A stretch of 64,000 nt of DNA from Cycas panzhihuaensis (Eukaryota; Plantae; Cycadophyta): positions 88,543,741 through 88,607,740 of the forward strand of contig CM041465.1 in the NCBI GenBank assembly GCA_023213395.1. Direction: 5' to 3'. Of this stretch, positions 1,289 to 54,100 are shown piece by piece; position 1 is the first letter of the stretch, and each line of letters opens with the position of its first letter. The notes beneath the pieces are model-generated. The model saw nothing but the letters and a program-made list of their open reading frames with translations. It was not told where the DNA came from and ran no database searches. Position numbers and translations under genes: made by a program.

Positions 1289-2738
1289 TGTAATGACCCC
1301 ATACTACATGTAATAGGGTAGAAGGTTAAGGGTTAAGGAGGATAAGAATATGGGATTAGGTAGCTCAGTAGTAACATAATATAATAATGGGTGGCCCTCT
1401 TATAAATATGGCACCCCCATCTTATGTAAGGTAGCTTGATATATTTTGAATACAATCTATTAGGGTTCACTTCAGTGCCCCTTTTGGTCTTCAGTTTGGT
1501 GACCATTCTATTTTCCAGCTTTATTCCCTCTTACTCTCTTATGGTTACAGGAGTTGGCTTATAACAAGTGGTATCAGATCTAGGGCAAGGGTAATTTTTT
1601 TTTTATTTCCTCTTTATTTATTGTAGGTATTAAAGATATAATCCTTAGTGGAGGATTGGAAATCCTATTGAAGGGTTTACAACGCTAAAGATCCTACTTA
1701 TGGCTAAAAATAAATACCCTAATAAGGATTTGTTCACTTTGCTACTAAAGTTTCAAGAGACCCATTATTATTTTACATTTAGTGTTTATGTGAGAAGCAA
1801 TTTATCACTTATGAAGAGTCGCCATTCTAAGAATATTAGAGATCTACCTATAGTCTTCATTATAGATGATATTTTATATCACTTAAAATCATAGTGGATG
1901 GACATAATATAGGGTCAAAGCTCTATTATCATGGAGGATTTTCGCTATTGGCCCACGCCCAAATCCTTGTTGTGAGTGTAAGACTCTATGCCTTTAGATC
2001 ACCTACAACTTGGTGATTTCCCACTACATAGATGCTTGTAACCTATGGCCATTGAAGAGCCAACTCTTAGATCTAGGGTCGAGCAACATCTTGCCTATTT
2101 ACGATTAGTCATATATAGTCATTGAAGTGCCCAACAACTAAAAGATGGTCATTTTCCACGAGATCTAATTTTAGGTGTGTGAAGTAGTACCTTACTAACA
2201 AGAAAGAAGAGCTTAATCACTTAGCTATAGAGCATGAATGGCACTCCTCAAGAGCTTTACTGGTGGTTGCCTTGTTAACCCCCACTGTCTGTATTCATAA
2301 AGGTGACTATGGAGAACCCTGGTTTCCTATTCTAAGTGACTAATCTTTACAAGATATGGTTATTAGATGGAACATATAACTCAAGATCCTAAAGATCCTT
2401 CGAAGCATCAATTCCATATAAGGTTTTAAGGTCCAGAGGAAGAGGATTTGATGCTTTCTTGACTATCTAGTTCATTTGTCCTTTTGTCCACTTAGAGTTG
2501 GGATTCAATTCATGATAGGGTAGGGAGGATGCACATTAAGCAACACCATAAGTCCTTGTTATGTGGATGAAACCAATAGAGGGACATGAAAGTCGCTAAA
2601 ATCGAGTAGAACAAGCACTTTAATACCTTGCTTATTCAAAGGATAAAGAATTTTTGAGGACACTATAGGTTTTGAACCACTGATATATGAATCCTTATTG
2701 CATTATCTGAAACAGAAATTTTGGCATTTATATCTTCA

Positions 2739-2828
2739 TTTTCCTTGGATACCTTCATAAAGATCTTTGTGGAGGGATCCTCTTAGATTGTAAATCGTCC
2801 TTATCACATCATAGACACCTACGTATCG
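2739..2828 (-). pseudogene. Possible captured mitochondrial carrier family fragment
   Basis: Minus-strand translation RYVGVYDVIRTIYNLRGSLHKDLYEG resembles the carrier-repeat segment Y.G..D....IY...G...LY.G; short, recognised by eye only. Confidence 0.35.
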
Positions 2829-3082
2829 ACTTTAAAACATGCATAAAAAATGCTACGAATGCAACATTCAAATACAGCTTTATAATGAGTCGGGATATGG
2901 CAAGTGAAAATGTTTGTAAAATTATTTGTATTATGGTTGTAAGTCAAATCACATAGGTACCAATGATGACGAATCGTTTAGTTATCAATAACATTGATAA
3001 GTTTCTAATTTTAATATTTATTTGATTACTAAATTGCTAAAGTTAAATAAAATTAAATTAAATTACAATTGCACTTGAAATC

Positions 3083-3153
3083 TACCTCTCTCATAAGATA
3101 ATCAATGGTCATATGGAATGCCTAAATGACTCTTTTCTTTCTAAAAGGGGCTT
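3083..3153 (+). other. Conserved hairpin motif, most diverged copy (element C)
   Basis: GGTCATAT-n11-ATGACT-n9-CTAAAAGGGGCTT matches the B1 copy (GGTCACAT-n9-ATGACC-n12-CTAAAGGGCTT); similar downstream context. Confidence 0.5.
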
Positions 3154-4633
3154 AATGACAATTAAAATAGTCTTGTAAAAATATTTTATACCTATGTACA
3201 TTTTTGTCATATCTTCTTCATAGAACGAATTGAGTTCTCCCAGATTTATTTGGTTCTTTGGTTCGAAAACTTTGATTTGGACTATGATATGTGATATTTT
3301 AAACTTTTCTTATAGTATATATTAATGTTTGAAGTTGAGTCTCATGATTATATGTCATTTTTATATAATTTTATAGTTTTTAGGTTGTTTAGATTTTATC
3401 TTGCATGCCATTGCTCTTGAGGTGACAACATTAAGGGGCTAACCATTTATGGACACCCCTTGAAAAAAAGGGACAAATGGAGCTAGGGACTGATAGGAAA
3501 TTACTTGCATCCTCTAAAAAAAATGGTCTTCTCGATTGCTACTATGACTATGAATAATTCCTTTTCAACTACAATGATGACCTTGACCTTGTTTACTTTG
3601 GGATGGATGGTGATATTCAACTTTATGACCGGGTTGCCACTCTAGAATAGTTATTTGAAGATTATTCTATAGTTTATTACTTCAAGCATGACTATGCTAA
3701 GGCCATATTTTCTATGCTATTCTTGCAATAGGACCTCCATCGAATGGTTTGAGAGTGGTGTCTTTCATACCCAGATCTAAATTGAGCTCCTTTAAGATGG
3801 AACTTCAAAGAGAAATAGGGGCTTGTCTAGCCATTGAGGCTTTTAGAAAAGAAAATGTGCAAGACCAAGATATTGGGTTGCAAGATGATCATCAACATAT
3901 TGAAGCAATCATTCCTAATTAGAGCACCCATCTAGAAGGAGAGGCTAAACAAGAGGAAGAAAAAGAAGATGAGGTACATTTTACTTTGAATCAACATGAT
4001 GAAATCCCTTTACTTAAAGGTGTAAATATTAAGCTAGCTCCATCATCATTCAAATTATAGGAGCATTTGGGTTCTTATTTTTATGGATTCTCATATCACT
4101 ATACCACATGCCCACGCTTTCTTTGGTTTTTATAGTTAGATGAAGGAGTCACTCTTTTTGGGACCACATCACTATCTACATGGACTTATGCATCTTTTCT
4201 CAACAATAAGATCTCAATAACATGATCTGTAACAATAATATCTCTTCATCGTCACCTTGACCAAACTACTACTTATGATATATTAGGTGATGGTGGTAGA
4301 TATATATTTTTGTATTAGGATGCTTTGAGGGTAAATCATCCGAGGGAAGAGGGCATGCAATGACCCCATACTACATATAATAGGATAGAAGGTTAAGGGT
4401 TAAGGGAGATAAGAATGTAGGATTGGGTAGTTTAGTAGCAACATAATATAATAATGGGTGGCCCTCTTATAAATATGTCACCCCCATCTTATATAAGGTA
4501 GCTTGATATATTTTGAATATAATCTATTAGGGTTCACTTTGGCACCCATTTTGGTCTTCATTTTGGTAATTATTCCATCTTCTGGTTTTCCTTCCTCTTA
4601 CTCTCTTATGGTTATAGGAGTTGGCCTATAATG

Positions 4634-7570: not shown

Positions 7571-10473
7571 GGATTACTAAACTATGGGGATGAATCAAGT
7601 TCATCTAATGGGTTGGTGATGTATTAAATCCAGATTTTACAAGGTGCCAAATGCTTCATTAAAATTTAAGCTTGTGAAGGTGGAAACTTTGTTGAGTGTT
7701 TGATCGATAAATTTTAACTTTGTATCTTCATTCTTCACATTATTCACAATGCAAATCATATTGAAGAATAAAGCATTTCCTAGGGAGAGTTTGAAGAACT
7801 TAGGAAGCTAAATTGGCCAAATCATACTTTATTTATAGTTTTAAAATATATGCAAATATTTATAAGAATTCCAATCATTGAGGACATTGTTACTAGCTAC
7901 AAAATATAAGATTAGAGCCTTTTAAAGTAGAAAGGGATGTAAAGAGTAATCTAAGGTAAATTGAACTAACACAAATAGGTTTTGATCTTTAGCTTTTGTT
8001 ATCCTAAGTTGGTTTTCTTATTTTTCCAAAGATCTCAATTCAAACAAGAGGATTATCATCAACCCAAATAGCCAAGTAATTTATGGCCTTTTGCCAAACA
8101 AGTTTTAAACAATTTCCTATTTATCCAATCCCACCATAACGCTTTGATGAGATCAAACTTGAACAATCTATGAAGGACAAATAATTGGATATGAATATGT
8201 CATCTAGAGAAACCTAAACTTAATAGGAAAAGAGATGGTTTTAAAGTAGAAGTTGTTGGCTAATTGGGGCCTCATGACCTCACTCCACCAATGTGCCATT
8301 ATAGTGAATATGACATAAACAATCAAGTAATATTCATCATAATTGCATCAACAAGGCATCAAATAGTACCATAATCATAAGAGGAGAGAGAATATTAAAA
8401 ATAAGAGAATGTAAATATGAGCAGAATGTTATTATTTATTAACAAAAGAGATTACATAGTCAATTACATATGAAGAAGGTGCAGCCTTAAATCAATAGAT
8501 CAATCTTCCACCAATCTCTCATAACTACTCATCTTATATCTTAATGACTTTCTCATATAGCTTATTTATACATCACTTGGGTGGTTCAACTACCCAATTA
8601 ATCCTTCATTAATGTATTTGTTTATATTAATTAATCATAATTTAATAAGATCAATAATCCCTATTTTCTAATGTATTATTAAATGTTTTATCATGGCCCT
8701 TTCCGAAAGATTATAAAATGATGGAGACAGAGTACAACATAATCAAATAATCAAAACATTGTTGCATAAACACATAAATCTTTGTATTCAATCCATGATG
8801 AGTGAGTACATAATAAATTTTAAATGTAGAAGGTTCTAAAGACACCAAGGTTGCACACCCTCCAAATATATAATTTGGGAGGAGGGAAACCTCAACCCTT
8901 AGAATTCAAACAATAATAAAATATTACATAACATAATTTAACTTAACTTAACTCAAACTAACTTAACCTTACCTTACACTTACCTTCATATGTGAGTACT
9001 CACATATATAAATTGGTAGGAGTGGGGTGTGCACTCCTAGGTTAAAGGTGGGAGTGGGGTGATAATCATTAACCCCAACATTCTCCTCCTTAATGGTCAT
9101 CATGAACAACTTTGTTTTCTCTTTAAGTATATATGCTTTCACTTTGAAAAGATAAAAATGAAGAAAACTTCCAAAAAATGAATTGTACCCATTTTTATAT
9201 TATAGGACCACTTGACTTGTCACTTGCTTTAGATGTATATGAGTAATTTCTATAAATGAACTTAAAAAGATATATGAAAGTCAAATGAAAACCTTAAACA
9301 TGTGTTATAAATGATCAATAAGAAATGAAATAAAGAACTCCTTAAAAAGGTTTGAAGACAAGACTGCTTTGGATATCTTAAATGATCAAGTTGATCACCT
9401 TCAAATCTATACTAAAAAGTGGCAAAATAAGATGAGATTACACCAATTTGAAGATTAATGAAATATCTAGTCAACGAAACCCACTGCTTTGAAAATGGAT
9501 TCCTATAAGTCAAAAATTTAATGTATCAAAATGTAGTCCTCCTTTTGAGGCTTAACGGGAGCTTGAGGCTTAAAATATTATGAAATGCTAGGAAAATAAC
9601 TTGTAGGACAATGTAAAATAATCAAATATAGTGTAGAGATCTACTTAATATACTTTGAGTTAAAAACTTTAAGAAATAATGTATTAAAAATATGTCATAA
9701 TAGTAAATTGGAAACTATTTTGTACCTCAACTTTGATGGCTTAGAACACCTACAAAATAGACTTAAAATGAAGTAAAAATAACTTAAAACTATAGATCTC
9801 TAAAAATCTTTACTAAAATTAGATGATACTCAATTCGAGCTATGAATCTTAAGACATTAAAAAACTGTAAAAGGTGTCTTACTAAGATTAATAAAATAGG
9901 GAGCAAAAAATAAGGTCAACATTGACCTACTTAAACTTGCAAGATATTGAGTCAAATTAAGAAAAATACTTCAAGAGTGATCTAAATCAAGATTTCAATG
10001 AATCTTACGGTTTTGAAACTGATCGTTGAGGAGATATAGCTAAAAATGTAAGTAGTATTTTTATGTAAATACGCTTAAAAACATAAAAGTGTCACTTTCA
10101 CCAATTAAAATAAATCCTAAAAATAAAATGAATAGCTGGTGATGAAGTTTGCTGAAAATAAATTGCTACAGAGTAGATTTGGGTAAAAATTAATATTTCA
10201 AAGTGATAAAAATATAACTTAATAAAAAGGGATTTTATGAAAATAGTTTAAAAAGCTTTAAAATGAATAATTGACTTTAAACTAATTAAAAGCTGGTCAA
10301 ATTAGCTCCAAATATGGTATATGATCACAAAATTATATCTCAAAAATGTTAGATGCAATGGTATAGGTTTTGTCGAAATCGATAACCCAATCAAAAGATA
10401 TGGCGAAAATTAAAATTACCTATGTTTAATGAATAATTTAAAAAAGAAAAAGAAAAAGGTTATAAAGTTTAAG

Positions 10474-10544
10474 AAGCCCTTTAGCAATGAGCTAATGGTC
10501 ATGTTGAAGAGATGTGACCGGGGGCTAAGTTCTCAAGGGGGCTT
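10474..10544 (-). other. Conserved ~70-nt hairpin motif (B1 copy)
   Basis: AAGCCC...GGGCTT closing stem, GGTCA/TGACC inner stem; homologous to 29441-29514, 51033-51102, 23277-23346. Confidence 0.75.
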
Positions 10545-11119
10545 AGGCCTTAATAACCTAGAATTCAAAGTTTATATAACATAATTTCATTAAATTTAAA
10601 GTTTATATTAAAAAAATAAAAATAAAAATAAATAAAAAACAGTATGCCACTGTCATTTGTTGTCATACAGTGTGATACGCTACCATCAGAATCACCATCA
10701 CCACTTTGGATCGCACAAACGGTGAATAATGACTGACTGCCAGACACGCCTGTCGGGTGCCGAGCAATAATCCTCCAATCGCAAGATTCACAGAAGACGA
10801 GAAGGTTCCAGATACTTTTTAGATGTGGGGATTCCTCACGCAGGTTGGGAGCAATGGTAGTGAGTCTAAGCTACATAATTTCATTAAAACATAATATTCA
10901 TGGCAAGCATTTAAGGAATTCAAAGATTAATCATGCTATCTTAAGTAGAAACAAAAGAGGGTAACAATGTCCGGAAAATTGTGGAAGAAACAATGGTGCT
11001 TCCACTAAGAGTAGTGAATTCAACCTCTCTTGTGTTAATTGGAGATACTATTGCTTAAGTTAGAGGCATTGGGGATGCAGAGAAAATACCTCCCAGATCG
11101 ATATCCTCATCGCAAGAGG

Positions 11120-11299
11120 AAGGTAATTTTGAATCAAATAATCGTTGGTCCTTGTGTAGTTGGCATTATTGTTGCCTAGAATAGTCTTTAGCAAGGTAAG
11201 CTTGGAGAACTTGCCACACAAAGATCGAATAATGCAATCCCTACCCTTATTATAGGTTGGAAGTTTTGGGTTTCAATCATCCTTTTAAACTTTTGGGTA
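11120..11299 (+). pseudogene. Captured Mpv17/PMP22-family gene fragment
   Basis: 60 codons KVILNQIIVGPCVVGIIVA*NSL*QGKLGELATQRSNNAIPTLIIGWKFWVSIILLNFWV; matches the plant Mpv17/PMP22 pattern (KV.LNQ...GP...WN.LWQGKL.EL...PTL..G..FW....LNFW); both stops are TAG at expected Trp positions. Confidence 0.82.
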
Positions 11300-11521
11300 C
11301 TAAATGATGGAGTAAAAATATAAATACAAAACAGAAAATGCTGGGGGACTATTTTTCTAGTAAAAAATCAAGCTCAATATGGGAACAAGGCAAGATATAC
11401 CATATAAATAGTTATAATAAAGAAATATTTCAAAAATTATATATTTATATAAAAAACATGAAAAATCTGATTCAATGGAGCCACAAATGAAACCAAATTT
11501 TTTCAAATATAACAGAGAGAA

Positions 11522-11543
11522 ATATATATATATATATATATAT
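11522..11543. repeat. (TA)n microsatellite
   Basis: Direct reading. Confidence 0.85.
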
Positions 11544-11779
11544 TTGTATATAAAATCTTTCAAATATATAGGAGAAGTTATATCAAAGAACCAAGAAACA
11601 TATATGTTTATATCTAAATATAAAAATAGGAAGAAGCTAGTAATGCAACTATGGCATCTTTGAAGAAAAATAACTTCTAAGGACAAGATCTTCTTCCACA
11701 ATGGTCGAAACTTCAAACGGATTCCTCCAGTAGACAGATCGGCTATAGTATAACTTCTCCAGGAAACTTGTTAGACTAA

Positions 11780-12290
11780 ATATACACCAAATCTTGCACA
11801 GATCTAAAAAAAAAATATTAAATAAATAGACCAAATGTACAAAAAATGGTTAAATATTTAATAAAATATGTAGATCTAGAAAAAATATTGCATAAATCTA
11901 GAGAAAATCTTGAATAAATGGATCAAATATACATAAAATGGTCAAATATTTAACAAAATATGTAGATCTAGAGAAAATATTACATAGATCTAGAGAAAAT
12001 ATTGAATAAATGGACCAAATATGCCAAAAATAGTTAAATATTTAATAAAATATGCAGATCTTGTTGATAAGACTTCGTAAAGTGATAAAACTTTGAATAT
12101 TTACTGATTATAGCTATGTTCCTACATAGATCTAAAAAAATATTGAATAAATAGATAAAGTACACTAGAAAATGATCAAATATTTGAAAAAAATATGTAA
12201 AACTTATTAATAAGAACTTTGTAAAGTGATGAGATCTTAAATATTCTTGATTGCAATTTATGCTCCTGCAGATTTGAAAAAATATCTAAA
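11780..12290. repeat. AGATCT-rich tandem repeats (92-bp unit x~3, plus a ~143-bp duplication) in the B1 5' region
   Basis: (T/C)AGATCT anchors at 11871, 11963, 12055; GTAAAGTGAT at ~12077 and ~12220. Confidence 0.85.
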
Positions 12291-14739
12291 AAATATTTAT
12301 TATTTCACAAATATAAATAAAGAATAATCAGAACTCTGATAAAAAATAATACAAGAAACTACTAAAAAACTTTGTAAAAGATAAATATAACCAATATTTG
12401 GCTTGACATGAGTAGATCTGCTATAAATGCTAATGGATCTTCTTTCTCCTAAGAAAACTTTAACAGGTTAACAAAATTTGAGTAACAGGCTAGCAATTTA
12501 TGATGTGATACTAGATGAAGGATTATAAAATGATAGAGACAGAGCATAGCATAACCAAATAATAAAATCATTATTGCATAAACACATAAATCTTTTATAT
12601 TCAATCCATAATGAGTGAGTACATAGCAAATCTCCAAATGTAAGCAGTGTTTAAAGACACCACGGTTGCACACCCCTCCAAATATATAATTTGGGGGAGG
12701 AGGGAAACTACTCAACCCCTAGAATTGAAACAATAATAAAATATTAAATAACTTAACTTAACTCAAATTAACTCAAATCAACTTAACCTTACCTTACACT
12801 TACCTTCACATGTGAGCACCTACATGTGTAAATTGGTGGGAGTGGGGTGTGCACTCTTGGGTGAAAGGTAGAGTGGGGTGATGATCATTAACCCCAATAT
12901 TCGATAAGCTAACATCTATCTTAGACTTGAAATATATTTCATCCTAGAATGCCATCAAATCTAAAATCTCTTTCAGTCTTAAGAAGTTACACATGCCTAC
13001 AAAAGCTAGTACATATTTATGTGATAAAAGTAATTAATGATATCTATATAAAGGATCAACCATCTACTAGTCTACATGGGCAACTAGTCATTGTAATTAC
13101 TAGTTCTTTAGGAAGTCCTTTGGATACATGGTTTATCACTAACAATTGGGAGAGTACAAATAATATACTTAAGTACTCTAGAAGTTTTGTCAACATAATA
13201 ATAACTTATGTGCAAGGAGTTCACTTGAGTTAATCACCCACATATGCAACCACCAATTCATCTACTAAATTTCCTCAGTAATTCCTAAAACTAGGTTTCA
13301 CTTGCATACCTGTAACACTCCTTATTAGAAACAATGCCCAAACCTAATGGGACCATCCATAGTCTATGGACTTTGTATGTTATCATGTTGAGGGGTTTTC
13401 TCAACCTTTCAATTTGAAAGATCTACCTCTTCCATGATTCTTTTAATAATAGAATCACTTATCATATATGGAATAATTACTGAAGAGAGTGGTTGCATCA
13501 TAAAGGGTATTCATTCATTGGGATCATGTTTAAGTTAAACTAGTTAAAATTTGTCTAATATTATCTTTTGCTAAGAAGAGTATGAATTCCACATAGTACT
13601 TCCTATATACCTTCTTAATGCATTGATATCTCAAGTTTTAACTATCAAGAAATTGCACAAAAACATCTTCATTATGTCTTTAGAAAATCTTCATTATAAT
13701 TAATCTTCATTCATTACTTCAACTTATCTTAACTCGTGCTTATGATCTTATTACTATAACCTAGTCAATCACAAGGTGCCTAGAGACTCTTTAGGTTTTC
13801 ATATGAGTAATGATGCCAAATGTTGGTTAATTAGGGCCTTATGGCATCACTCCACCAATATATCATTGTAGTGTAGATAACATAGGCAATCAAGTAACAT
13901 TCATCATAATTACATCAACAAGACATTGAACAATACCACATTCATAAGAGGATTACGAATATTGAAGATAAGAGAATGTAAATGTGAGAAACAATGTTAT
14001 TATTTATTAATAAAAGAGATTATAGCATTGTCTAGGCATCAAAGGCTACTAACTTCATATAATACATTAGTCCTTCTAGTAATCACACACAACTACCCAT
14101 CTCATATTTTAATGCCTCTTTTATGTAGCCTATTTATAGATATGTTAGGTGGGTCAATTACCCAACTAATCCTCAACTACCCCTTCATTAATATACTCAT
14201 TTACATTAATTAACCCTCATTTAATATAAGTACAAATGATCCCCCTTTGCTAATGTATTATTAAATGTTTTGACTATGGCCCTTTTATAGGCTGATAGAA
14301 GTTTTGTTGAACACATCCACCTTTGGATCTCCTTGCTGGAAAAAGTTTTTAGTTGTAATGATGATTTAGAGGTGAAATTATTACATGCATACATTATATC
14401 ACAAATCCAAAAAGAAAACCACTTATTGGATTAGGCCATGATAGTAAGTGACAACCTAGTTTTCTAGTTGAAGGAAGTAAATTCTAGCACCAAATTCCAC
14501 ATGGTGATATACCTGGTTTATGCACTGCTTAGGTTGAAGTAATTTGTTTATTTTAAACCAAAAAAAGACAATATTAATGATGATGTGTTAATTTCTTTAA
14601 AAATTTCAAAAGTATGGATAATAAAAGCACCATTAATTTTATATAAGTAGTTAGATAGCTTTTTATATATCATACAACACTATATTCACTAGCCTCTAAG
14701 GATAGATGAATAGGTTAAAATTTAGATTAAATGGAAAGA

Positions 14740-30668: not shown

Positions 30669-30783
30669 GTCAAAGAGAAATATGATGAGTTTGAAATAGA
30701 ACTTTTAGAGATCAATGTAAACAATAAAAAAACTTCAGTGTGGTTACAGTGAACTTTTAGAGTTTAAGCTTGTGTTGCAAAAG
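30669..30783 (+). pseudogene. Captured V-ATPase subunit a (VHA-a) exon fragment
   Basis: VKEKYDEFEIELLEINVNN-(+1 A)-KKLQCGYSELLEFKLVLQK ending AAG|GTAGG; matches plant VHA-a [32 protein letters not shown] as recalled. Confidence 0.82.
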
Positions 30784-32800: not shown

Positions 32801-33322
32801 TAGCTAATATTTCTTGCTTGTAAGGAAATCTGCCATAGAATGCCAGTAAATCCTATTGCTCTTCTTAAAAAAACTTCACCAATGGAGATGCAATAGTCCA
32901 AAATCTCACTCTGATACCAAATGTTGGAAAAAATATTTGTAGGAGAACAGGGCAGAACATAGAATAGAATCATATATCTCAATATTGTAATACATCAATA
33001 TAACATAAACTAAAAATCCATTGTAGTCATTCTATTGTAGTGAAAAGAGTTACAAATTTTCCAAATAAAGGCAGTGTCTAAAGACAACAGGGTTGCACAC
33101 CCCTCAATATTTATAATTTGTGGGAGGAGGGAAACTCCTCAACCCCTAAATTTAAAATAATAATAAAATGATGTTAACTCAAATGAAACTAACTTAAATC
33201 AAAGTTAAAATTACCTTAACTTACCTCGACATGTTGAGCATCACATGTTTAAATTGAAGTTGATAAGGTATACAATCCTAGTTGGAAAGGTGGGAGTGGA
33301 GTGATGACGAGTAACTCCAACA

Positions 33323-37055: not shown

Positions 37056-40000
37056 ACTTCCAAGGACAAAGTGTTACAAGTACAAATGATCCAAATGTGC
37101 ATTAAGGGGGAGTGTTGGAATATTAATGCACATTTGTTTTGTACCACATACAAGTGGGTTCCACTCTCTATATTGGCCTGTACTATAAATACACAACATA
37201 GTGTATCATATTGTAATCATGATGTAAGGATGTTTTGTTAATACAATGGAGGTACCTTAAGGGTACAGATTCGATCTTGTGGAGGTGTGTTTTGTCTGCT
37301 TGTAAATATCTTATTACAGTGTCTATTTTCCAACACAAGTTCGGATCGATTTATCGAAGTCACAGGGTTTTAAAGTCTCAAATCAATCTTCCTGGCTGGT
37401 CATATGTCATGAAGCTCCTGCATCAATATACCATATGTCGCCATCCTTCAAACTAGTAGCCAAGGCAATAATGAGCACATTTTCTTCTTCCTTTTCTTCT
37501 ATTTTTTCCTTTCTATATCCTTCGATAGGCCATTTTCCTTTCTGGATCTCACTTCTTCGCTATGGGCATTGATATGGATAATGCTTGGTCTGCCCATAGT
37601 AGCAGAAAATGCCAAAAATTCTATAATTACTAGAGATAGGCCTAGTTTTTCCATAATTAAAACAAATTCTGGTATATCTACCTCATCCACATCCTCTATA
37701 TTCTTGCTAACATCCACACCCTCTAAAGTCTGATGTCAAGGCTCATCCATGATTCTAGTTTCTCCCATGTGGGCCTAGGTTCAACCTAGATGAAAAAGCA
37801 TCCTCCAGTTCTGAAGAATCCTCATACCTCTTGTTTCTCTGTTCCTATCTCAATAGCAACCCTGTTAATTCATCAAGAGTCATTTTATCAATCTGATCAC
37901 TATTCGTGATAGTGTTAATAGTTGTCTCAAAATATTTTGGCAACTTGGTTGCTACCAATTCCACCAATTCTTATTCTGAGATCAAGCCTCCTGCACTTAA
38001 TAGAATATTTTGAATTGAAATAACTTTATGCATGAACTCTGTTATAGTCTTACTCTCTTTCTTGTGTAATCTATATAATTCTTCTTTAAGAGCAATTATC
38101 TTGACCTTGTTCTTTTGTCCATATAAATTTTCAAGACATTTCCAAATAGCAGAAGATAAATTCAGTTTTTCAACATACACCAAGATTGAATTAGAGATTA
38201 ACATTTTCAGAGTGAGCATTCCTATATTATCTCTTTCCTCTTAATTTGCTAGCTTTGGATCTGAGCTATTTGGTCGAATTTCAGTTCCATTTACAATGCT
38301 CCAGGCATTTTAAACTCTCAAAATGGTTTCTACCTTAATCTTCCAGACATGGTAATTAAAATCAGTTAGCTTTTCTTGTTCTGGTAAGGAAATGAGTGTA
38401 GAGGCTATTGAGTCTAAGAAAATCTAAGATGACACAGTTTGGGGTATACACTTATACATATTTTTGTACAAAAATGAAGTTGTATAGAATTGAATAAAAT
38501 GCACCTCAAAAGAAAGAGGGCAAAGCGAGGACCTCAGATCTGCTATTAGTTTTTTGAAACAACTTATAGATTTTGAGAAAATAGTCTTAAAAGATAAGGA
38601 GGCATGGCTAGGGCAAGATACATTTTTACTTGAATTTTTAAAAACACTATGCCAAATTCTTCAATATTGGTCACAATGTCTTTTTGATGTTAATACACAA
38701 CATTTATGATAGATTTGATCTAAAGAATTGTGAGGAAATAAAAGAAATCTGTGAAAATAGCTCAAACCCTGCATGGACTAGTAAAGTGGGAAAAATGACC
38801 TTAAAACTTTCTCGGATGACTTCGACCTTGAAGAGAAAAGTGATGGGAAGACTAAGATCTACTTGTTGGTGAAATTTTGTCTCAATATTAAACACTTGAA
38901 TTTTTCTATCTGTACAACCATACAGTTCCATACACAGGTCGTATAACACCTTAAATTCACCTTCAGATAAGTTCTTCTAATAGTCTTGACACTCAGTCTG
39001 GCCTTATTAGCTTCTATGTTTATTGGCCTCTCTATCTGCCTTATACTGGGACTACCTTTCTCAGGCACCAAACCCTTTCTCAAACAGGCAAGGTAACCTA
39101 CTCTGATACCATGTTAGCAATCTCAGCAGTAATAAGGCAAGGAAATGACTTTTATTCCATGGAGATCTAGTCTCCTTTAAATATACATCCTCAAAGATGA
39201 CCGATACCAATTGAAATATAAATGATCTATGATAAACAACCAAGTGTCATTACCTTAGACTTAAGTTACATTTAAGGGTGCTCAACTTGACCCCTTTTTA
39301 CACTTAGATAAAACATTACATTTCAAACCTAGATAAAACATTACATCTCAATAGGGCTTTATAAGATATAAAGCCTCTAATAGAGATGTTTCTAGATGAT
39401 TATAGGTGGGTAGTCCCACACCTATGAGATTTCATAAATTGATTGCTTGTGTTCAAGAAAAGAATAAACATACTCAAGTTGGTCTCTAGTAGGCTGTAGG
39501 CTACTTTTGAAAAAGAGCTATAGGAGTCTAATAGGTTTAGCATCTTCAAATAATAAGGTTCTAGGCCTAGTACTTATGGTAACTTGATAAAATCCATTTA
39601 TCTAAAAATGGTAGTACATATTAAATACAAGTCTAGACAAAGCCAAATTAGTGGTTATAGATATTAAGAAGATAGAAGAAGTGGTTGAATCTTTGTTATC
39701 TAAGATAAACTCCTTAACTAATGAATATAATGCTTATTCTCTAGATAATGAAGTACTTATGAGTAAGCACAAATTCATCAAAACCTCAAAGGAGGAGACA
39801 AAGGAAGCTATGAAGTAGTTTACCTTTGACCAAGAAACAAAGCCCAATAAATGAGTTTTATAAATATTTAAATAGGCTTCCCAATATGTAGGCCTCTGGG
39901 GTTTGATGGTAAGAGAGAAATACAACCTTACCCTATTTAATGATGAGATATATAAATTAGAGGGAAGTATACAAGTGATTAACCTATAAGTAATCCCCCT

Positions 40001-43302: not shown

Positions 43303-46300
43303 TGTTGGATATGTTGAATACTTTGTAAATGTTATATGGATATAAACATTACACTTGAGTCTCTTTGTCAAGTTCGAGGTCCCATTATAGGCCCTTTGGC
43401 TAGGGGGTTTGGGGGGCTAATGGCACCCTAGGTGGGGTTCATAGGAGGGTTTTTGGGGAGCCCCTAAGAAAAAATTTTGGGTGTCTTATGGGGTTCTTTT
43501 TTGGCTCATGGTTTATGCCCATTCTATAATAAAACCGCAAGGTGGTATCTTATAAAGTTGTTTCTATATATTCTTCTATAATGGTATATGTAAAGAGGTT
43601 AAATGAATCTTTAATGAGTTGATGAGAAGAGTTGGGATTTTTATCTCTATAATTCTTCAACTGTTACTTAGATTAATAAAAGGTCTATGCTTAGACCAAA
43701 ATTTCCTAGTATTCTTTATTATGTGATTGGTTTACTTATGTTATTCACTCTTTGCATGGTTTAGAGTTCTGTTAATACATTACTTCTATGGTTATATTTT
43801 CTCTTTATTTGGTATTAGAGTTAAGGGTTTTAGTTTTGTGAAGATCCATTTGATGAGTAGGAGCCTTGTTTGGTGAACTTGGGTGCAAAGATTATGGTAA
43901 GTGCTACAAAGATAGAGATTAAAATGTTCAATGGCCAAAACTTTGAGTTGCGGAAGTTAAAGATGGAATATATCCTCATAAAAAAGGATCAATGGATTAC
44001 TATAGTAGAAACAAATCCTATAAATATTATTGATAAAGACTAAAAGAAGCTTGATAAAAAAGTAATTATTTTAATAAGGTTATGCCTTTTAGGCATGATA
44101 TTATTAAATATTACCATAGAGTCTACAACTAAAGATCTATGGAATAAGTTAGAGGTACTGTATTAGACTAAGTCCTTAGTTAATAAGTTATTTCTTTGAA
44201 AAGAACTATATTCACGTAAGATGAGTGATGGAGATGTAGTTATAGATCATCTCACTACATTTAACACCATGGTGAGCTAGCTTATTTTATTTGGGATAAC
44301 AATGTCTAAGAAAGACAAGTGTATTACCCTACTATATTCAGTTCCTAATTCTCAGGATAATCTTATGATGATGATTAGTAGCACAAATGCTAACAATCTA
44401 AAATTTGATAATGTTATTATTGCTATTTTATTAAAAGAGATAAGGCAACAATAAGAGGCACACATAAGGCCTAAGAACAATAAAGGTCTAGGAACAAACA
44501 AACAAAATTAAGAGGGAAATCTAAACCTCTAATTAGAGGCACCTTGGTATGTTAGAGATGTGGGAAGGCTAACCATGTGAAGAGATAATGTTGAGTCAAG
44601 GTTGATAAGGGAAAGTCACTTGAAGCTACTTCTTGCACAATAGTAAAAATCTTCAATGAAGCTAATGATGATGTTTATTGGCAACCTTAGGTAAGTTATC
44701 AAATGTTGAGACTTAGTTAATTGACTCTAATACCTTACTTCATGTTACTGTCCATAGGGAGTGGTTTTAGAAATACAAAAGTATTAATGGAAGTGAAGTA
44801 TTTCTTAGGGATTATTACTCATATAAAATTACAAGTTGTGGAAAGGTAAAGGTTCAATTTATAGATAGAAGAATTAAAACTATCTCTAATATAAATAATA
44901 TTCTTAATTTGACTATGAGTATATTATTTATTAGTCAATTGGGTGATATAGAATTAAAAGTAATTTTTAATAAAGATAGTTACAAAATTGTTTAAGGAAT
45001 ATTAGTGTTAGTAAGAGGGGTCTAATTTGGAATGCTATATAATCTTAATGTAAGCACTATGTGTGTTGGCAATTGCAGTTTGATTATTATAGAAAGTAGC
45101 AATAAGGTAGGTGGGACCCAAGTATCACTTGCTAGTAAAATTGTATTGTGACATCAAAGATTGGGCCATATTAGAGAGAAAGGCCCCCATGGTTTATTCT
45201 CTAAAGATATGGCATAAGACATCTCTAGAATTAATGGCTTCTTTGATTTTGATTTCTATGAACATTATGTGTATAGTAAATAGTATCATGTCAATTTTCT
45301 TTCAAGCTCGAAGATAGTAAAGGGTATTCTATAACTAGTACACAATGATATTTTTAGACTTTTTAATGTGGGTGGGTCTAAGTACTTTATCTCATTCATA
45401 AATGATTTCTCGAAAAGACATGGTTGTACTTTCTTAGGAAGAAATTTGAGATCTTCTATAAATTTAAAAAATTTAAGGCCTTGATAAAAAATTAGAGTGA
45501 TAGGTAGATCATGGTATTTAAGACTGATAATGGAGGTGAGTTTTGGTTAAAGGAGTTTGAGTAGTTCTATACATAGTATGAGATAATATAGTAGAAGATA
45601 AATCCCTATACACCATGACAGAACAACATGGTTAAAAGGATGAATAGGACCTTACTGGAGAGATCAAGGGGTATGCTCACTACTATAGGTTTAGAAAAGA
45701 AATTCTGGGCTAAGGCTATGATGACAATAAGCTACATGATAAATAGATCATTGACTATTATCTTAATATACAAAACACTTAAAGAAGTGTGGTCTGGTAA
45801 GAAGCCATCTCTTGGTCATTTTAAAGTTTTTGGTTGTGAAGCTTTTATGCATGTTCCTAACATATAGAGGACTAAGCTTGATTACAAAGCACAAAAGACT
45901 ATTTTCATTGACTATGATGATGGCATTAAATGATTCAAGCTTTATTACCCTGAAACATATAAATTTATGTATAGTCATGATGTTATCTTTAGATAGAAGT
46001 TTAAATATCTAAAGCAGGATAAAGAACTAAAGGAGGAAGACTCTAAAAAGTTATAGTTTAAGATAAGGGATGAAGATTCTATATCAAACTATGAGTTAGT
46101 TGAAGAGGAAGGACTAGTTGTGGAGGTAGTCTAACATCAAGAATCCCACATCTTGAGGAGATTAATTCATAAGAGAAGATAACCTAACAGGTATATTCTT
46201 AAAGACTTCCATCACTTTTATTTCATTTTATCTACTATAGATGATGATCTAGGTATTGTTTGGAAGGCTCTAGAGTTAAAAGAAAGCCAACTTTGGATGA

Positions 46301-46679
46301 AGGCTATAGAAGAAGAAATGATGGCCTTGGATAAAAATAACACATGGGACTTGATGGACCTGCTTGATGATAGAAAACCTATTGATAATAAATAGATCTT
46401 TAAGAAGAATTTTTGGGAAAATAATACTATGAAAAAGTACAAGGCCTACTTGGTAGCAAAGGGCTATTCCCAGGTCAAAGGAATATGTTTTGATGAGCTA
46501 TTTTCTTCTATTGCAAAGGTATCTTTAATTAGATTTTTATTGCCTATAGTAGTTGCCTACGGTCTTGAGGTGGATCAAATGAATTTGAATATTACATTTT
46601 TTTCATGATGACCACGAGGAAGGAAATTACATGTTATAGCTTAAAGGTTTTGAAGTTGTAGGAAAGGAGAATATGGTGT
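43303..46679 (+). mobile_element. Element I: Ty1/Copia (Tork/Tnt1-like) 5' part: LTR 43303-~43807, gag, PR, INT, start of RT; interrupted by J
   Basis: PBS TGGTATTAGAG at 43810; gag start KIEIKMFNGQNF; zinc knuckle ~44550-44592; integrase ORF 45628-45867; RT LVAKGYSQ ~46450. Confidence 0.88.
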
Positions 46680-49600
46680 TGGAAGCACACCTCTAGGGGG
46701 TCATTAGATGTAAGGAGATCAAGCCTATACAATCAACAACTATAGAGCTAAAAAACATTTGGACGCAAAGGAAAGGATTACCTACAAAGGGTATCCATGT
46801 ATCAGAACATAGGTTTGAGGACCCAATAAATGGCATACAAACCTTCCCTTATGGTGAGTACCTTCTTAGATTTGAGATGGGAAAGGGGGCTTCCTCAGTT
46901 TGCTAAGTAGCCTTAAAGGGACCTTCCTATCCTCAATAGTCAAGGAAGGAGGATTGAGATGAAAGATGCCTTTCCCAAGAAAGGAGAAAGGAAGGAGGTA
47001 GACCCTAATGGAGAAAAGGTGTACCTACAAACAAGAAATGAGTGATAGGTAATGAAGCTGCAAGGAGGAAGTTGGTTGGAAAAGAACCAAATCCTAAATA
47101 AAGATAAGACAAGAAAGAGGGCACCTTGAGGAGGATGCTCCTAAGGTACCAACACCCTAAATCGATGGTTAGGTGTGCAAAGGTTAGGCAAGGTGTCCTT
47201 TATTTCATTTTACAATGAGTTAGATAGTGTTATGGGTTGTTACTATTTTTGATTTATCATAAATTATGAGGGGAAAGAAAGAACAATACTACTCTCTCTC
47301 TCTCTCTCAACTCTAGCCTCTCTCTCTTTGCTTTTTATAAATGTTAAAGAAACTAAGAAAATAGGAATCATATGCAGAGAAGCCCCAAGGAGTGATGAAG
47401 GCCATTTTGTGACAGTCTTTAGGAAAGATATGGATTTGGTTATACCTAGAGAAGCCATCCATCAAGGACATGACTTTGAATCTAACATTTGATTAATGAA
47501 AGGAAGAGGGAAGTTGTCTTTAGGGCATACATTATTAATATCATATAAATCAATGTATATATGTATCATTCCATTCTTTTTAGCAACAGGAATGATATTT
47601 AAGACCCACTTGGGGTAATTGATGGAGGTGATCAACTCTGCATCCAAGAGTTTCTTAACTTCCATCTTCACGACGGTGGATAGCTTAGGATGGAGGGGGC
47701 ATTGCTTTTGCCGCATAGGGTGAGTGCCTGGAATAGTAGTAAGGTTATGGGTGATGATGGAAGGGTCTATTCCCTTCATGTTAGTGTAATCCCATGTGAA
47801 GATGTCATAAAAGTCCTGAAAAAGAAGGGTATATTCCTTTATTTCCTCATGAGAACACTCCACTCCCACCTTGATGACCTTGTTGAGAGTAAGGACAATG
47901 TCCTTGGTTGCCCCCATGTACATGGCATTCCCTTCCTTGGAATGAAGAGGGGCTCAATCAATAAGAAAGGGTGAAGAAGAGGAATTAGGCAGACTTGGGT
48001 CAGCTAAGGGTGACCCAAGGGCTAAAATCTTCTAGTAACCAAGTTTGTGATGACCAGGAGGAAGGTTAGGCACATAGCCTACTAGATGCTCTAATAATGC
48101 CTTGTCGTTCTCGAAGCAATCTACCCCATGGATAGTTATGCTTGGAGAAGATGTGGGACAAGGAGTAGGAGGAGTGGTGAGACCATAGCAGTTGACCCAC
48201 CACTCAATATAGTTGGGAGACCTTCGGAAGAGTTAGAGGGTGGTCTCCTGGGATAGGTGACAGGATGTTCCCTTACCTCACCACTCAAGGAGGGTGATGA
48301 GGTATAAGATAAAGTGAGGTGGAAAGTTACATAAGAGATAGGTGTAACAATGTGTGACTCAGAAAAAAGACTAGACTCCTCAACAAAAGAGGCTTTAGGC
48401 CAGGAATTAAAATGAAATAAACACCTCTTACTCATGTTCAGGAGGGATATGGGATAAGGGAGGTCCCTATCCTCACTGTCAGACTCATCATTGCTCAACA
48501 TGAAGAGGTACCTATAACTCCCCACAACAATAGAGGTGAAGCAAATAAGGTTAGAGGAAGAAGGGGAAGGACCTTCTTCTAAACAAGATGAGTTAGGGAT
48601 GTTAATAGAGCAAGTGAAAGTATGGGAAAATGGGCCCTTATTGCCCTTAACTAGGTCACAAATAACTTAACAGGATTAATATGATTGCTTAGTGGGAGGA
48701 GGCTCCTAGGAAATAACCTTCGGAGGAGGCTCCTAGGAAATAACCTTCATTTGCTCCTCATGGATGAATTTGAGTTACCCCCAACAAGATGAACATACGC
48801 CTTCTATTTGGTCTATCCATGGATGTCCTAACAAAAGATTATAGTCCATGTCAACATCGAGGACCATGATGTCAGTGAGGACATCTTTATCCTTGAGGAT
48901 AAGAGGAATGGAAACTGACCCTAAAGGTATTTTCTTACTACCATCGTGGCCTTAACAACTCCACATGACTAGTTCGAGAGATGCTATACCCAACACTTGC
49001 ATGATTTGCAAGAGCATAGCATTGACAGAAGAACAATTATCTATAATAGTTCTTCAAAGAGTACACTCAAGAGTGTCTATAGATATAATGAAAGGGTAGT
49101 ACCATTGGCATTCCCTTTCACTAATTGGAGGGAGATCTTTAAGGTCAAATGAGATAATAGATTGATGGCTTGGGGCAGTACCCAAGTTGTGAACAGAAGC
49201 ATTGACTAACCCTAAAATCTCTAGGAGGAGAGTACACTGCTCTAGATAGCTCCTCAAGACATCCATCATGGACATCCCTATAGCCACGATATAGAGCTCG
49301 TCGATGATGGAGAAGGGCTTTCTCTTCCCAGTGGGTTGGGGAAGCACCCTTCGAATATCATAACGACTGAGGCAAACACGGATTGTCTTGTGAAGTGACA
49401 GAATCTCTGAAGGAGGATTCTCCAAAGGAAGGTCAAGATGAGAGGAAGAAGAAATACCTATGGTTTCTTTGGTCACTTGAGACTGGGTCAAAGCATATAA
49501 AGGTGTAGTCTCAAGTATCTAGATAACTCTCTTTCCCTTATTTCAGGATTGAGATGGAGAAGATGTTTGATGGTGAAAACCAGAAGAGGAGAAAGAGTTC

Positions 49601-50584
49601 CTTACCCCCTTTCCCTTAGCTTGTGTAGGGCGAGGATTAGGGGATCTTCCTCTATTTCGATTCCCCCTTTGTTGGGTATGCTGTTCCTATTCCCTATGTT
49701 TGGGGAAGGGGTCTCTATAAACAGGTTAGTTTAGATTGGACCTAGATGCTCGTTTAGGAGAGGAGTCACAATACGAGGCAGATTTGGGGTGTTGTACCCT
49801 ACATTGCAAGTCCTCATAGAAGTACTCACCATGAATGGAACATTATTTCTTCTCCAAGGAAGATTTCATCTTCCTTGCTTCAGAAGCATGGGTATTTCTA
49901 TTCTTGGGAGGCACGACTTAGGAGGCTTGATGAATAGGTTTATGGGAAGTTGGTGATGAAGGTGGTATTTAGAGTTTAAGCTCCTTCATCGTACGTTCAA
50001 AAGAACATATAGTAGAAGTCAATGGGTCCAATGTCTTCTCTATTAAATGAGTTGAAGGCTTGGAAGGTTGTTGGGTTTTGGTGTCATGGGACGGAGGGGC
50101 TACCTCATGTCATAGCGATGACTTGAGAGGTTTCTTGAGACTCACTTGGATCTTAATAGCCTTAAGAGCCAAACATTTGGCTATGGTAGAGTCACATGTT
50201 GTTTCCCTTATCTTGAGAACTTCAACATGTACTTCAAGATGAAGAGCATTTATAAAAAGATCCCTTTTTAACTCCTTGGGCAGAGTTGCCTTCGTGGAGT
50301 AGAAGAGATCATGGAAATATCTCACAAAGTCACAATTCATTTCATCGTGACCTTCTTTTAGGGATAAGAGGGCCTTCATTCCACTCTTGAAGGGACAAGC
50401 AATGTCAAAGTAGTTTACAAACTCATCGATGAGTTGTTGGAATGACTGAATTGAATGTTTAGGAAGGTTATAGAACCACTTAAGGGCATTGCCTTGCAAG
50501 GAACACAAGAAAAGTTTCATCAAAATGTGATCATAAGCCCAATAATCGATACACACCATATAAAAGCTTCTGACATGTTCACTT
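46680..50584 (-). mobile_element. Element J: Tat/Ogre-like Gypsy, internally deleted (LTR end, RT N-part, protease, gag), interrupted by K
   Basis: Terminus TGGAAGCACACCTCTAGGGGGTCATTAGA mirrors the K LTR end; RT ORF 47462-47923 (CPKDNFPLPFI); protease IIDNCSSVN ~49020-49050; gag ORF 50110-50559. Confidence 0.82.
48695..48748. repeat. Perfect 27-bp tandem duplication
   Basis: GGAGGAGGCTCCTAGGAAATAACCTTC x2. Confidence 0.95.
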
Positions 50585-51032
50585 TGAAAGTCATAATTTT
50601 GGACTTGTTTTTAAATGTAATCCACTACTGTTGATACTTAGAGCCTTATAAACCTCTTGTAGCTTTCCTTCGATCAGTCTCAACTCTGTCTTATTGATCC
50701 CTAGCTTGCGCGGAGTTGCCTATCTCTCTCCATTCCTCCACAGCATCCGCGCATTGTTAACACCATTTTTTTGTTTTCTATTATATAAAAATTAAGTATT
50801 TTTTAAAAATTTTCATTGATCCATCTGTGTGGATCCTTAGCACCCCTGATCTGGTGTTTTTCAATCATTTTTTTATTATTTTAATTTCCTGTTTCGACCT
50901 CTACACAATCACGATGACGATAATGGCAATTCACAATATAAACATATGTTATAAACATTTTTTTAAATAAAAGTTTAAACAAATTTAATATATTACATTC
51001 CTCTTGGCATCTGTGTATGTGTTGAAGTCCTT

Positions 51033-51102
51033 GGGCCCTTTTGGATGATTAACCCCCAGTTCTTGACCTCCATGTGATCATAAGCTACTTAATAAAAGGG
51101 CT
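51033..51102 (+). other. Conserved hairpin motif (K LTR copy)
   Basis: GCCCTTTT...TTAACCCCCAGT...CATGTGATCATAAG...AAAAGGGCT, aligns with B1/B2 reverse complements. Confidence 0.72.
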
Positions 51103-54100
51103 AATCAACCTTTATAAAAATATTTCTTTTATATTTTTTAAATTTATTACTCAAAAAGAGTAACATGTAGTTTTTCTATTGTAACTCCTCACTAGAATAC
51201 CAATTTTTAATGAAACTAATCTCACCACGATTGTGACTTTGCGAGCTTCACCATGGACTAGCCACTTTTTAAATTTGGATCTGTTTTGATCAAGATTTAA
51301 TAGTTTGAAGTCACTTAAATTTTCAGCCTTTATTTTGATAATGATAAAGAGGTCCCTTCATTGTTTTCACTATAACTTTCTCATCTAATATCCATTTTCT
51401 GAACGGTTAGCTTTGTTGGAAAGTTAATTTAACCCTCTTCGTGATGATATATTTTTTTAAGTAATTCAAAGTTGTTTTATAGATATTTCAAGCTAGTGAA
51501 GTTAAGGTACTTAATTAAACCTAGTTCTTCATTATTTAATGTTTTTTGAAGTATTTTCTTCAAGTTTTTTTGAATAAGCCAATTAAAAGGTCTTTAATTT
51601 ATAGGTGAGTTTTTTTATACCTTTTGATAAAGTTATAATTTATTTTTATAGTATTTTAGTCTTATGGATCATATTCAAGCCCTAAAAATGATCTCTACAC
51701 TTTTTTTTTTTTAATCTTAAGTTATAAGAATCAATTTTCCAAACGGTCAAATCTGTCAGAAAGGTTATTCAATACTCTTTAGTCTAAAATAGGTTTCACT
51801 CAATTCTAACTTCATTTGGTAAGTGTTTGAAGCTAGTTACCTTTAGCTTCTTGTTTAGTCCTTATAGGCATTATCCTATAACTTTTCAAGCATTACATTA
51901 TCTCAAAAAAAGTTATATCTACTTTATTAATTACTAACAATTTATTATTGAAGCTATTATTATTCTTTATTTATATTTTTCAAGTTTTTTTTGCAACAAG
52001 AAGCTAGATCTTTAGTACTTTAAGATAAGTAGAGCTACCTTATTAAATAGGTATATTTTGTGCTATATTTGTTCATTTTCTATATTTCTTAGAAGAAACT
52101 TGTCATTTTTAGACATTTCTATCATCTAAAGCAAAGGTTACACTTTAGATTTTTTGTTTTTTTTTTTTTTACTACTTTCAAAAGGATCTACTACTTTCAA
52201 GAGGATAGCTACTCATCTTCATAATCTAGCATACTTTATTTTGCATTGATAAAGGTCATTCATTTTACTTTAAGTACTCACTTTGAAAAATTCAAGCTTA
52301 GTTGAAGAATATCATTGATTATCTATCCTTTTATCATTAAAGGTAGTTATATTTCATATTTGTATGGATAAAGCTTCAAAATAGCATTTGAATCTCTACA
52401 TCATGTCAAATTAAAAACCAAGTTGTATATCTTTCTGTATTCTTTTGATTAATTAGAAAGAAAAAACAAAGGCTCATTAATTGATTTATTTGACTTGAAG
52501 GAAAGGTTATTGCTTGTATCTTCTTTTTGATAATTTGTTATCTCGTTTATTTATTCTTACTTAATAAATATTGTCTTTCCTTTTAGTTTTTTTTTTGTAT
52601 AAAAAGAACTTTTTAAAACCCTAAGTAAGACCACAAGCATTAATTAATTTATTATCACATTAAAAAGATAAATCCTGAATTGAATAACCGTATCTTTCTA
52701 GCCTTGCAAGGGGAACGATTAGGACCCCTGAAGTTACCACCTTACACACACTAATTGGCCTACTCATATTAGATAAGGAAATCCATTAGCTATCAGGTGT
52801 TTTCAGTGGCAAGCTGAGGTGCAGAACCTTTTCCTTATTTGGTGTTTGGAGACCAAGGCTAGACATAGAGAGGATGAGTGCCTTGGCTTGAGTAACCTTC
52901 ATCGCTAGATCTATTGCTAGGCATAAGTCTGGCACAGGTGGGTCCATAATTTAAGGGGTGTAAAAACCTTCTTAGCAGCCTACATATTTAAAAGGAGAAA
53001 ATCCCTTCATCTCTTCTTCTCCTCATCTCACATAAAAAAGAACCATATTAATAAAAAGTAGTATTATATTTGCATAGAAAATGTTCCTCCTTTCTTGTCT
53101 CCTTACATTACTTTCAATCACATCATTGATTATCCTTTTTATGCATATAATCTTAGAGTTCCCTTTCAAGATAAAAGGTAAAATAGTGTGAATTGAGAGT
53201 GAGGATTTACTTGTTTCACTTATTAACTCTTTTATTTCATTGTAACACAAATACAACTTGAAACATCATATTTGAGACAAAGTATAACACCGAAACAAGG
53301 AACTTCACCTTCTTACATAACCAAAAAGAACCTTTTAGATGAAGAGAGAAAAGGAAACCTTGTTTCTTCTACCTTCAAAATTATTTTGTTTATATTTGCC
53401 TGCGCATGTAAAATAGAAGTTGAAGGTTTAATTCAAAAGAGCATATCTCCTTGCATAAACAAAGATGGAAGACATTTAATAAAAAAGACTCCTTTCTCTT
53501 ACCCTTTCATTTCTGCATAAGAGAAAATCATACTAAGGAAAGGAAACATTGCATGTGCATAAGAATATTTATTTTTTCTTTCTCCTTTACATTACTTCCT
53601 ATCGCATTATTGACTCTTTCATTTTAGGCACGTAACTCTAAAGAATTTTTTTTCTTTACCAAAAAATAAAGAGAGCAATTTGAGATTGAGGATTTACATT
53701 TTTCATACATTTTTAGTGACATTTATTCATTGCTTTATTTTGTGATAACACAATTATAACCTACAACACACAAAATACTGCACTTTCCAATAAAACACCA
53801 CACTCAAGTAAAACTTTGTATTCTCATGTAACCCTAAAGAGGATACTTTAGACAACTAGGAAACATACTAAACCTCTCCTACCTTTGTTTCATAATGATC
53901 ACTGCCTCTTTTTCTGAAAGAGGAATTTATTCCCTCCTTCAAAATGAGGATAGGGGAAGATTCCCAACCTAAACACATCACCAACCAACTTAAATCCAAA
54001 ACCCTATAGGTAAAAAGAGAACATGTGTCCTGTGAGTCCTCAAACCTATACTCATGAGGTGCATGAATATCCTTCAAGGACAAGCTAAGACCTATCCTCA

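Follow-up and report, generated by a model that had tools for sequence, protein, structure and literature searches.

Chimeric long terminal repeat (LTR) elements and gene capture by LTR retrotransposons are both already known. Chimeras arise by template switching between unrelated co-packaged RNAs, as in BARE-2 of barley (from BARE-1 and Wis-2) and in the long Veju terminal-repeat retrotransposons in miniature (TRIMs) of wheat (PMC13317346). Maize Bs1 and other LTR retrotransposons capture host genes (PMC13317346; PMC7264820), and as a rule the transduced pieces run in the same sense as gag-pol (PMC7264820). Furthermore, internal antisense promoters or antisense additional open reading frames (ORFs) are described for Grande (gene23), RIRE2, Retand and AtRE1 (PMC7264820). 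Here we analyze a stretch of 64,000 nucleotides from Cycas panzhihuaensis (contig CM041465.1; hereafter the window), in which two related Copia-type elements (B1 and B2) and the region upstream of a Gypsy-type gag (element K) carry, judging from their alignment, one homologous non-coding block of ~1 kb.

The first-pass annotation of the window had assigned a common module to five LTR elements (B1, B2, C, E and K), consisting of variable cargo, a conserved hairpin and palindromic units of ~170-190 bp, always in the same order in element sense. Our comparisons indicate that what these elements share is not such a hairpin-plus-unit cassette but a single ancestral block of ~1 kb without coding function. 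Three of the five copies are solid (B1, B2, K; two of them in one family), the copy in E is weak, and that in C is not supported. As to the origin of the block, we give about an even chance to one old chimerization that would have put a segment of a Gypsy LTR into a Copia leader, followed by descent.

The block shared by B1, B2 and K

With 29-35% G+C across most of its length, the window is AT-rich, and it is made up of nested, decayed plant LTR retrotransposons. Sensitive BLAST with +1/-1 scoring gave abundant AT-rich chance matches, and nhmmer with shuffled-window controls was used instead; all homology searches for block DNA were made within the 64-kb window. The copies of the block and of its G+C-rich motif are the following:

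9386-10640, plus strand: block copy of B1 (nhmmer; B1 itself is minus sense)
28531-29600, plus strand: block copy of B2 (nhmmer; antisense to B2)
50955-51844, minus strand: block copy of K (profile of B1 and B2; same strand as K gag)
29426-29545, plus strand: G+C-rich motif of B2 (TATA-like run, then AGCCCC...GGGGGCT)
10459-10575, plus strand: motif of B1 (search with the B2 motif, E 4e-8)
51119-51004, minus strand: motif of K (search with the B2 motif, E 2e-4)

The B2 block finds the B1 copy with E 2.6e-27 and the K copy with E 5.4e-10 (nhmmer). B1 and B2 are 66% identical over ~1.1-1.25 kb, and between the B and K copies the identity across the aligned block is 51-54%. When only B1 and B2 are used to make a profile, it matches K at 51331-50957 with 65.0 bits (E 3.5e-20) and a second time, collinearly with the first match, at 51839-51463 (17.8 bits, E 6.8e-6). 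The homology among the three copies spans the whole block and not the motif alone. On the left side the end of the block is fuzzy, with alignments that fade gradually into AT-rich sequence and show no sharp edge; on the right side the three-way homology ends at an A-rich tract ~90 nt past the motif. Past the motif, B1, B2 and K each continue with a different sequence that has no second copy in the window. Because tblastx matches are alike in all frames and ~10% of the codons are stops, the block is non-coding. A coding origin (e.g., from the end of a LINE ORF2) was rejected, as the tblastx matches are equal in all frames. A second block-like copy beyond the cargo, as in an LTR-cargo-LTR element, was not supported by nhmmer.

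The motif, ~90 nt long and at the end of the block shared by B1 and B2, is the stretch that had been regarded as a conserved hairpin. A search with the B2 motif gave no match in the window besides B1 and K (nhmmer), an alignment of all three has a mean column identity of 73%, and a degenerate pattern of the motif core occurs three times in the window vs not once in 100 shuffles. Its folding is not shared, since K and E fold no better than shuffles (z +0.25 and -0.23, respectively, vs -2.7 for B2 and -3.65 for B1). B1 and B2 fold via an outer AGCCCC/GGGGCU stem, and the inner pairings differ between them; the bases of the outer stem are either invariant or simply lost in K, so that there is no covariation in the stem. 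Neither is the motif better conserved than the rest of the block. In sliding 90-nt windows its identity is 0.64-0.69 between B1 and B2 and 0.59-0.67 between B2 and K, vs up to 0.72 and 0.67, respectively, in other parts, i.e., identity is even along the block. Rfam gave no match for block or motif at gathering and E-value thresholds, and a tRNA scan revealed nothing relevant. Since there is no fold better than chance in K and E, no extra conservation, no coding content of the block and no Rfam match, the 'hairpin' is not a structure under special conservation but the single conspicuous G+C-rich landmark of an AT-rich block that has decayed evenly. A metagenome scan with the degenerate motif pattern gave 23 loci (all with a G+C content of 0.38-0.62), which were rejected as chance matches because only the pattern was matched and not the motif flanks or the block.

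The palindromic units found no support either. Inverted self-alignment of six regions (B1, B2, K, C, E and 34797-35300) gave z values of -1.5 to +1.7, i.e., within shuffles. Autocorrelation at 170-190 nt has no peak in the unit regions (the positive control, a 92-bp array at 11812-12087, gave z 7.7), Tandem Repeats Finder found no repeats there, and the best internal direct alignments of these regions are within shuffles. The block copies thus contain no inverted-repeat, periodic or internal-repeat signal above shuffles.

The Copia-type carriers and their leader

B1 and B2 are themselves nested in other elements. The features of both, with those of their hosts, are:

8705-12902, minus strand: element B1, whole (LTRs 8705-9083 and 12517-12902; nested in X)
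8254-8702 and 13821-14285: LTRs of element X, host of B1 (self-comparison)
26996-27394 (3') and 32922-33322 (5'), minus strand: LTRs of B2, nested in the outer Copia
24931-25171 and 39114-39354: LTRs of the outer Copia (self-comparison)
32908-32919, minus strand: primer-binding site (PBS) of B2 (TGGTATCAGAGT; tRNA-iMet type with 11 of 12 bases, separated from the 5' LTR by 2 nt)
27801-28142, minus strand: Copia-type gag N-terminal fragment of B2 (Retrotran_gag_2, E 5e-6)
29601-31785, plus strand: variable segment ('cargo') of B2; only the self match in the window, few contigs of relatives
29747-30172, plus strand: PPR fragment of B2, within the LTR-bounded element (PPR_2, E 3.3e-17)
10641-11470, plus strand: variable segment of B1, unique in the window
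11192-11320, plus strand: weak Mpv17/PMP22 fragment of B1 (PF04117, E 4.5e-4, 20.6 bits, cut-off 27)

B2 is a bona fide minus-sense LTR element. Its LTRs are 91% identical (87% in B1) and have TGTTG...CAACA ends, and a target-site duplication (ATTTG/ATTTA) marks its insertion within the reverse transcriptase (RT) of the outer Copia. Polypurine tracts adjoin the TGTTG of the 3' LTR in both B2 and B1; the PBS of B1 is degenerate. The LTRs of B1 and B2 are 73-77% alike in self-comparison, i.e., these are related LTR elements. The gag match of B2 (26.5 bits) is just below the cut-off of 27, and the ORF has a Met start and the N-terminal pattern of Copia gag; no relatives of this fragment were present in the protein collection. 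B2 is without pol, and B1 is without any coding remnant.

Since the gag N-terminus of B2 begins at 28142, the 4.8 kb from 32907 to 28143 are all leader. In element sense, this leader comprises a PBS-proximal part shared with B1 (including the 92-bp repeats), the variable segment, the motif and the rest of the block, followed by gag; the layout of B1 is the same, minus gag. The PBS-proximal leader of B1 contains a 92-bp tandem repeat (11812-12087; 2.7 copies, 87% matches), and B2 has one decayed counterpart of it at 32235-32326.

Host-gene fragments antisense to the element, which had been reported for B1, B2 and tentatively C, are present in B2 (PPR) and, weakly, in B1 (Mpv17/PMP22), and none was identified in C. 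Both fragments are antisense because they lie on the plus strand of the window and the elements are minus sense; they share the strand of the block and the direction of its TATA-like run. No host domains were found in C or E. As host fragments stand near the motif in the B family only, no enrichment in position or orientation can be claimed. A variable cargo after the motif does exist in so far as this sequence differs in B1, B2 and K; in K, however, the 'cargo' would be the element's own U5, leader and gag start.

Contigs of relatives, taken from four runs, were mapped at 80% likeness, each run covering at most one third of the words of 27000-32999. The summed contig word depth cannot rank parts and is given as a hint only; for run X1 it is:

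27000-29199 (LTR, fragment of gag and the greater part of the block): 2e4 to 1.5e5
29200-29399: about 5e3
29400-29599 (bin containing the motif): about 270
29600-29799: about 10
remainder of the variable segment: tens to hundreds
closer to the PBS: climbs back to 1e4

The shape of the profile is alike in all four runs, i.e., high on LTR, gag and most of the block and scant on motif and cargo. As a hint, this profile points to a B scaffold that forms a high-copy family and to a B2 cargo that has not been amplified. It also suggests, with the same caution, that most B2-like copies in relatives are without a B2-like motif, which is unexpected for a conserved slot boundary. The first 200 nt of the variable segment of B2 (29600-29799, before the PPR ORF) are G+C- and CpG-rich and nearly uncovered by the contigs of relatives; this pattern fits, as expected, a young, single-copy captured gene start.

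Two other elements had been counted among the carriers:

21129-21576 and 24274-24666: LTRs of element E (self-comparison; about 21126-21576 and 24269-24666 by their LTR starts)
23286-23506, minus strand: block remnant of E (~220 nt; antisense to plus-sense E)
1286-1564 and 4353-4631: LTRs of element C (self-comparison)
3103-3159, plus strand: motif copy claimed for C, not supported (5.6 bits, E 0.87)

A profile of the three block copies matches E over ~150 nt (23506-23354, minus strand), in the best-conserved part of the block, with 15.4 bits (E 1.5e-5), vs a best score of 4.6 bits in 35 shuffled windows. A motif-like stretch (23349-23286, minus strand; 2.3 bits alone) follows directly after it, in the expected order and on the expected strand. 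Pairwise alignment of E to each of the block copies is not significant. E thus probably carries an internally deleted remnant of the block. In C, the best motif match (5.6 bits) is equalled by 7 of 30 shuffled windows, the block finds no match and the interior is unique in the window, so that C cannot be kept as a member. The LTRs of C and E each match their own partner only in the window search.

C and E are both plus sense, with a PBS at 1569-1580 in C and, in E, a PBS-like sequence at 21533-21544 and a polypurine tract before 24269. Note that the direct repeat of E runs through a tRNA-iMet PBS-like sequence in both of its copies (21533-21544 and 24623-24634); its repeated unit is therefore LTR plus PBS, as in a tandem LTR-internal-LTR-internal array. 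E also has a segment of ~100 nt in common with X, in inverted orientation (24058-24162, just before the 3' LTR of E, and 13036-13138 of X; E 1e-7), and on this likeness X and E may be related non-autonomous elements.

Self-comparison revealed three further, unnamed LTR pairs:

15441-15906 and 19824-20288
34507-34732 and 37113-37335
56210-56511 and 63532-63824

Gypsy element K and the origin of the block

The region 50590-51850 had been taken for a plus-sense LTR of K. The Gypsy-type gag lies instead on the minus strand, and the block is on the strand of gag:

50113-50610, minus strand: Gypsy-type gag of K (PF03732, E 2.7e-6, above cut-off)
~51125, minus strand: TATA-like run
~50955, minus strand: A run where the three-way homology fades
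50823-50812, minus strand: ...CACA, 2 nt, then weak PBS-like TGGATCAATGAA, not significant by itself
~50790, minus strand: G+C-richer gag-like start

Protease-like and then RT-like pieces, recognized by eye, follow the gag down to ~47316. The layout of K would be U3, promoter, R, U5, PBS and gag, with the block as U3-R of the 5' LTR. This fits, as the block is in sense with gag, 170-340 bp upstream of it, and the TATA-like run stands just before the motif; since K has no partner LTR in the window, we infer the LTR status of its block from position only. The order that had been described as common to all elements in element sense therefore applies to B1, B2 and E (block antisense) and is reversed in K (block in sense).

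Several further observations concern K and its surroundings. An exact 14-mer, GCTTATGATCACAT, is present on the minus strand both in the K motif (51072-51085) and at the start of the K gag ORF (50525-50538), 550 nt apart, which may be chance. K adjoins a plus-sense Copia (43810-46605) that has a PBS-like sequence at 43810-43821, a gag start at ~43861, an integrase SH3 match at 45628-45864 and RVT_2 at 46396-46605. This Copia and the truncated RT end of K meet near 46900-47300 with no LTR between them, which suggests a deletion or rearrangement junction there. A second, related gag, K2 (55722-56186, with 55626-56186 as wider limits; plus strand), is inverted with respect to that of K; the two gag copies (50132-50559, minus strand, and 55743-56170, plus strand) stand head to head, 5.2 kb apart, with 62% protein identity. 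K2 is preceded by a G+C-rich (43%) stretch of 1.3 kb with long proline-rich open pieces (54287-55604), for which no Pfam match was found; K is without it. The K gag has one relative in the protein collection, a protein of 182 aa on a 1.4-kb contig that starts mid-gag.

According to the chimerization explanation, a K-like LTR segment (U3-R) would have joined the long PBS-to-gag leader of a Copia-type non-autonomous lineage, antisense to the carrier, either through template switching between co-packaged RNAs in reverse transcription or through a nested insertion with a later deletion. The block would then have passed by descent to B1, B2 and probably E, which is much older; the B-type scaffold would have been amplified to high copy number, and the block would have decayed evenly along its length. 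The cargo of B1 and B2 would stem from separate events, in which the same leader took up host-gene fragments in the ordinary way. Speculatively, the antisense polarity may come from plus-strand DNA synthesis switching onto packaged RNAs after the second strand transfer. As a single chimerization with vertical descent can explain everything seen, a dedicated capture-site module is unneeded. Of the exchange between retroelement families that had been proposed, one part survives: since the homologous block is common to a lineage of Copia type (B1/B2 and probably also E) and to the 5' region of Gypsy element K, sequence would have passed between families at least once.

Several points weigh against this explanation. 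The PBS candidate in K is weak, and its protease- and RT-like pieces gave no Pfam match with an E value of 0.1 or below. The element is cut off after RT, and a second copy of 50590-51905 was not found in the window. Upstream of the K2 gag there is no block and a different, G+C-rich region stands in its place. The link to E is a 15-bit profile match, and the depth measure in relatives is unfit to rank parts. Furthermore, the direction of transfer could be the reverse.

The block could also be native to the abundant Copia-type leader (B, E), the K copy being a fragment of such a leader that nested insertion and deletion brought next to a 5'-damaged Gypsy, with no transfer between families. We consider this possible, though clearly less probable. 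The window is densely nested (B2 lies within another Copia RT and B1 within X), and because the B scaffold with most of the block appears to be highly abundant among relatives, chance adjacency of this kind would not be rare. The truncation of K on its 3' side, its missing LTR partner and the different region upstream of K2 are likewise consistent with such an origin. However, the K block is on the gag strand, at the distance of a promoter-bearing LTR and with a properly placed TATA-like run, and on the far side of the block (51850-54300) no Copia gag, polypurine tract or LTR of B or E type is detectable.

That the block is an independent mobile element, either the 3' part of a poly(A) retroposon (LINE-like) or a Helitron end, inserted separately in the ancestor of B, in E and in K, appears improbable. 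The three-way homology does stop at the A-rich tract, the left end is fuzzy as in 5'-truncated retroposons, and CTAG occurs 30-40 nt past the motif in B1 and B2. However, there is no coding remnant, and neither a target-site duplication nor a terminal repeat was found. The A-rich tract may go back to a poly(A) tail; in B1, however, it looks like slippage of an AAAAAT unit, and B2 and K still share a few bases past the A run. At the 3' end of a Helitron, a short hairpin rich in G+C stands 10-12 nt ahead of the terminal CTRR, and homology ends there. The motif differs from this: its stem encloses a loop of ~50 nt, unlike Helitron hairpins, the CTAG is more distant, K has ACAG in place of the CTAG of B, and the homology of B1 and B2 runs ~60 nt past the CTAG.

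We regard as very unlikely the portable cis-module of the first-pass annotation, i.e., an internal antisense promoter plus hairpin that moves between families, fixes a slot for host fragments and serves as decoy, siRNA source or capture hotspot. It would account for the block being present in at least three LTR contexts, for a variable segment that begins at the same boundary past the motif in B1 and B2 and for host fragments in sense with the TATA-like run, and there are LTR elements for which internal antisense promoters have been described (PMC7264820). However, C is unsupported and E weak, host fragments occur in one family only, the hairpin is neither structurally conserved nor exceptional in sequence and has no unit structure beside it, the orientation is reversed in K, and relatives cover the motif far less than the rest of the block, counter to a conserved slot boundary. 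Just as little credence is due to a Gypsy-LTR-derived cassette that would serve as internal antisense promoter, have a start-site stem at the edge of a capture slot in Copia leaders, transcribe host fragments in sense (dsRNA or decoy) and have been acquired repeatedly by B, E and other families in this genome.

Comparison with known chimeric and gene-capturing elements

A new kind of cis-element is not established by this locus; hairpin and units drop out of the claim, and so do two of its five copies. The carriers B1, B2, C and E resemble large retrotransposon derivatives (LARDs) and TRIMs in having LTRs, a PBS and a polypurine tract and no pol. Unlike these, B2 has retained the beginning of a Copia gag, and its mosaic leader is, at 4.8 kb, unusually long. 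As in Grande, RIRE2, Retand and AtRE1, a TATA-bearing, putatively promoter-like segment points against the element's own transcription. However, the promoters of those elements are located downstream of pol, ahead of the 3' LTR, and an ORF specific to the family is under their control, whereas no conserved ORF follows the block here.

The B family is comparable to Bs1 as a non-autonomous LTR element with host-gene fragments (PPR confirmed, Mpv17/PMP22 weak). It differs from capture of the Bs1 type in that the fragments of B1 and B2 are antisense and located between the PBS and gag; because transduced pieces are usually in sense, this capture is a variant.

The closest parallel to the block itself is offered by BARE-2 and Veju, in which a segment of one family likewise stands inside another family and is propagated as its part. 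In contrast to these, the partners here come from different superfamilies (Gypsy-type K, Copia-type B and E), and the segment is antisense in the recipient and located in the leader rather than in the LTR; here we infer the joining mechanism. If the chimerization explanation is true, a non-coding sequence crossed from one major superfamily of plant LTR retrotransposons to the other, to be amplified afterwards in the leader of the recipient. The block would then be a dated landmark in a long mosaic Copia leader that could help to order capture events, and it would extend the chimeras known within superfamilies, BARE-2 and Veju, to a pair of elements from different ones.

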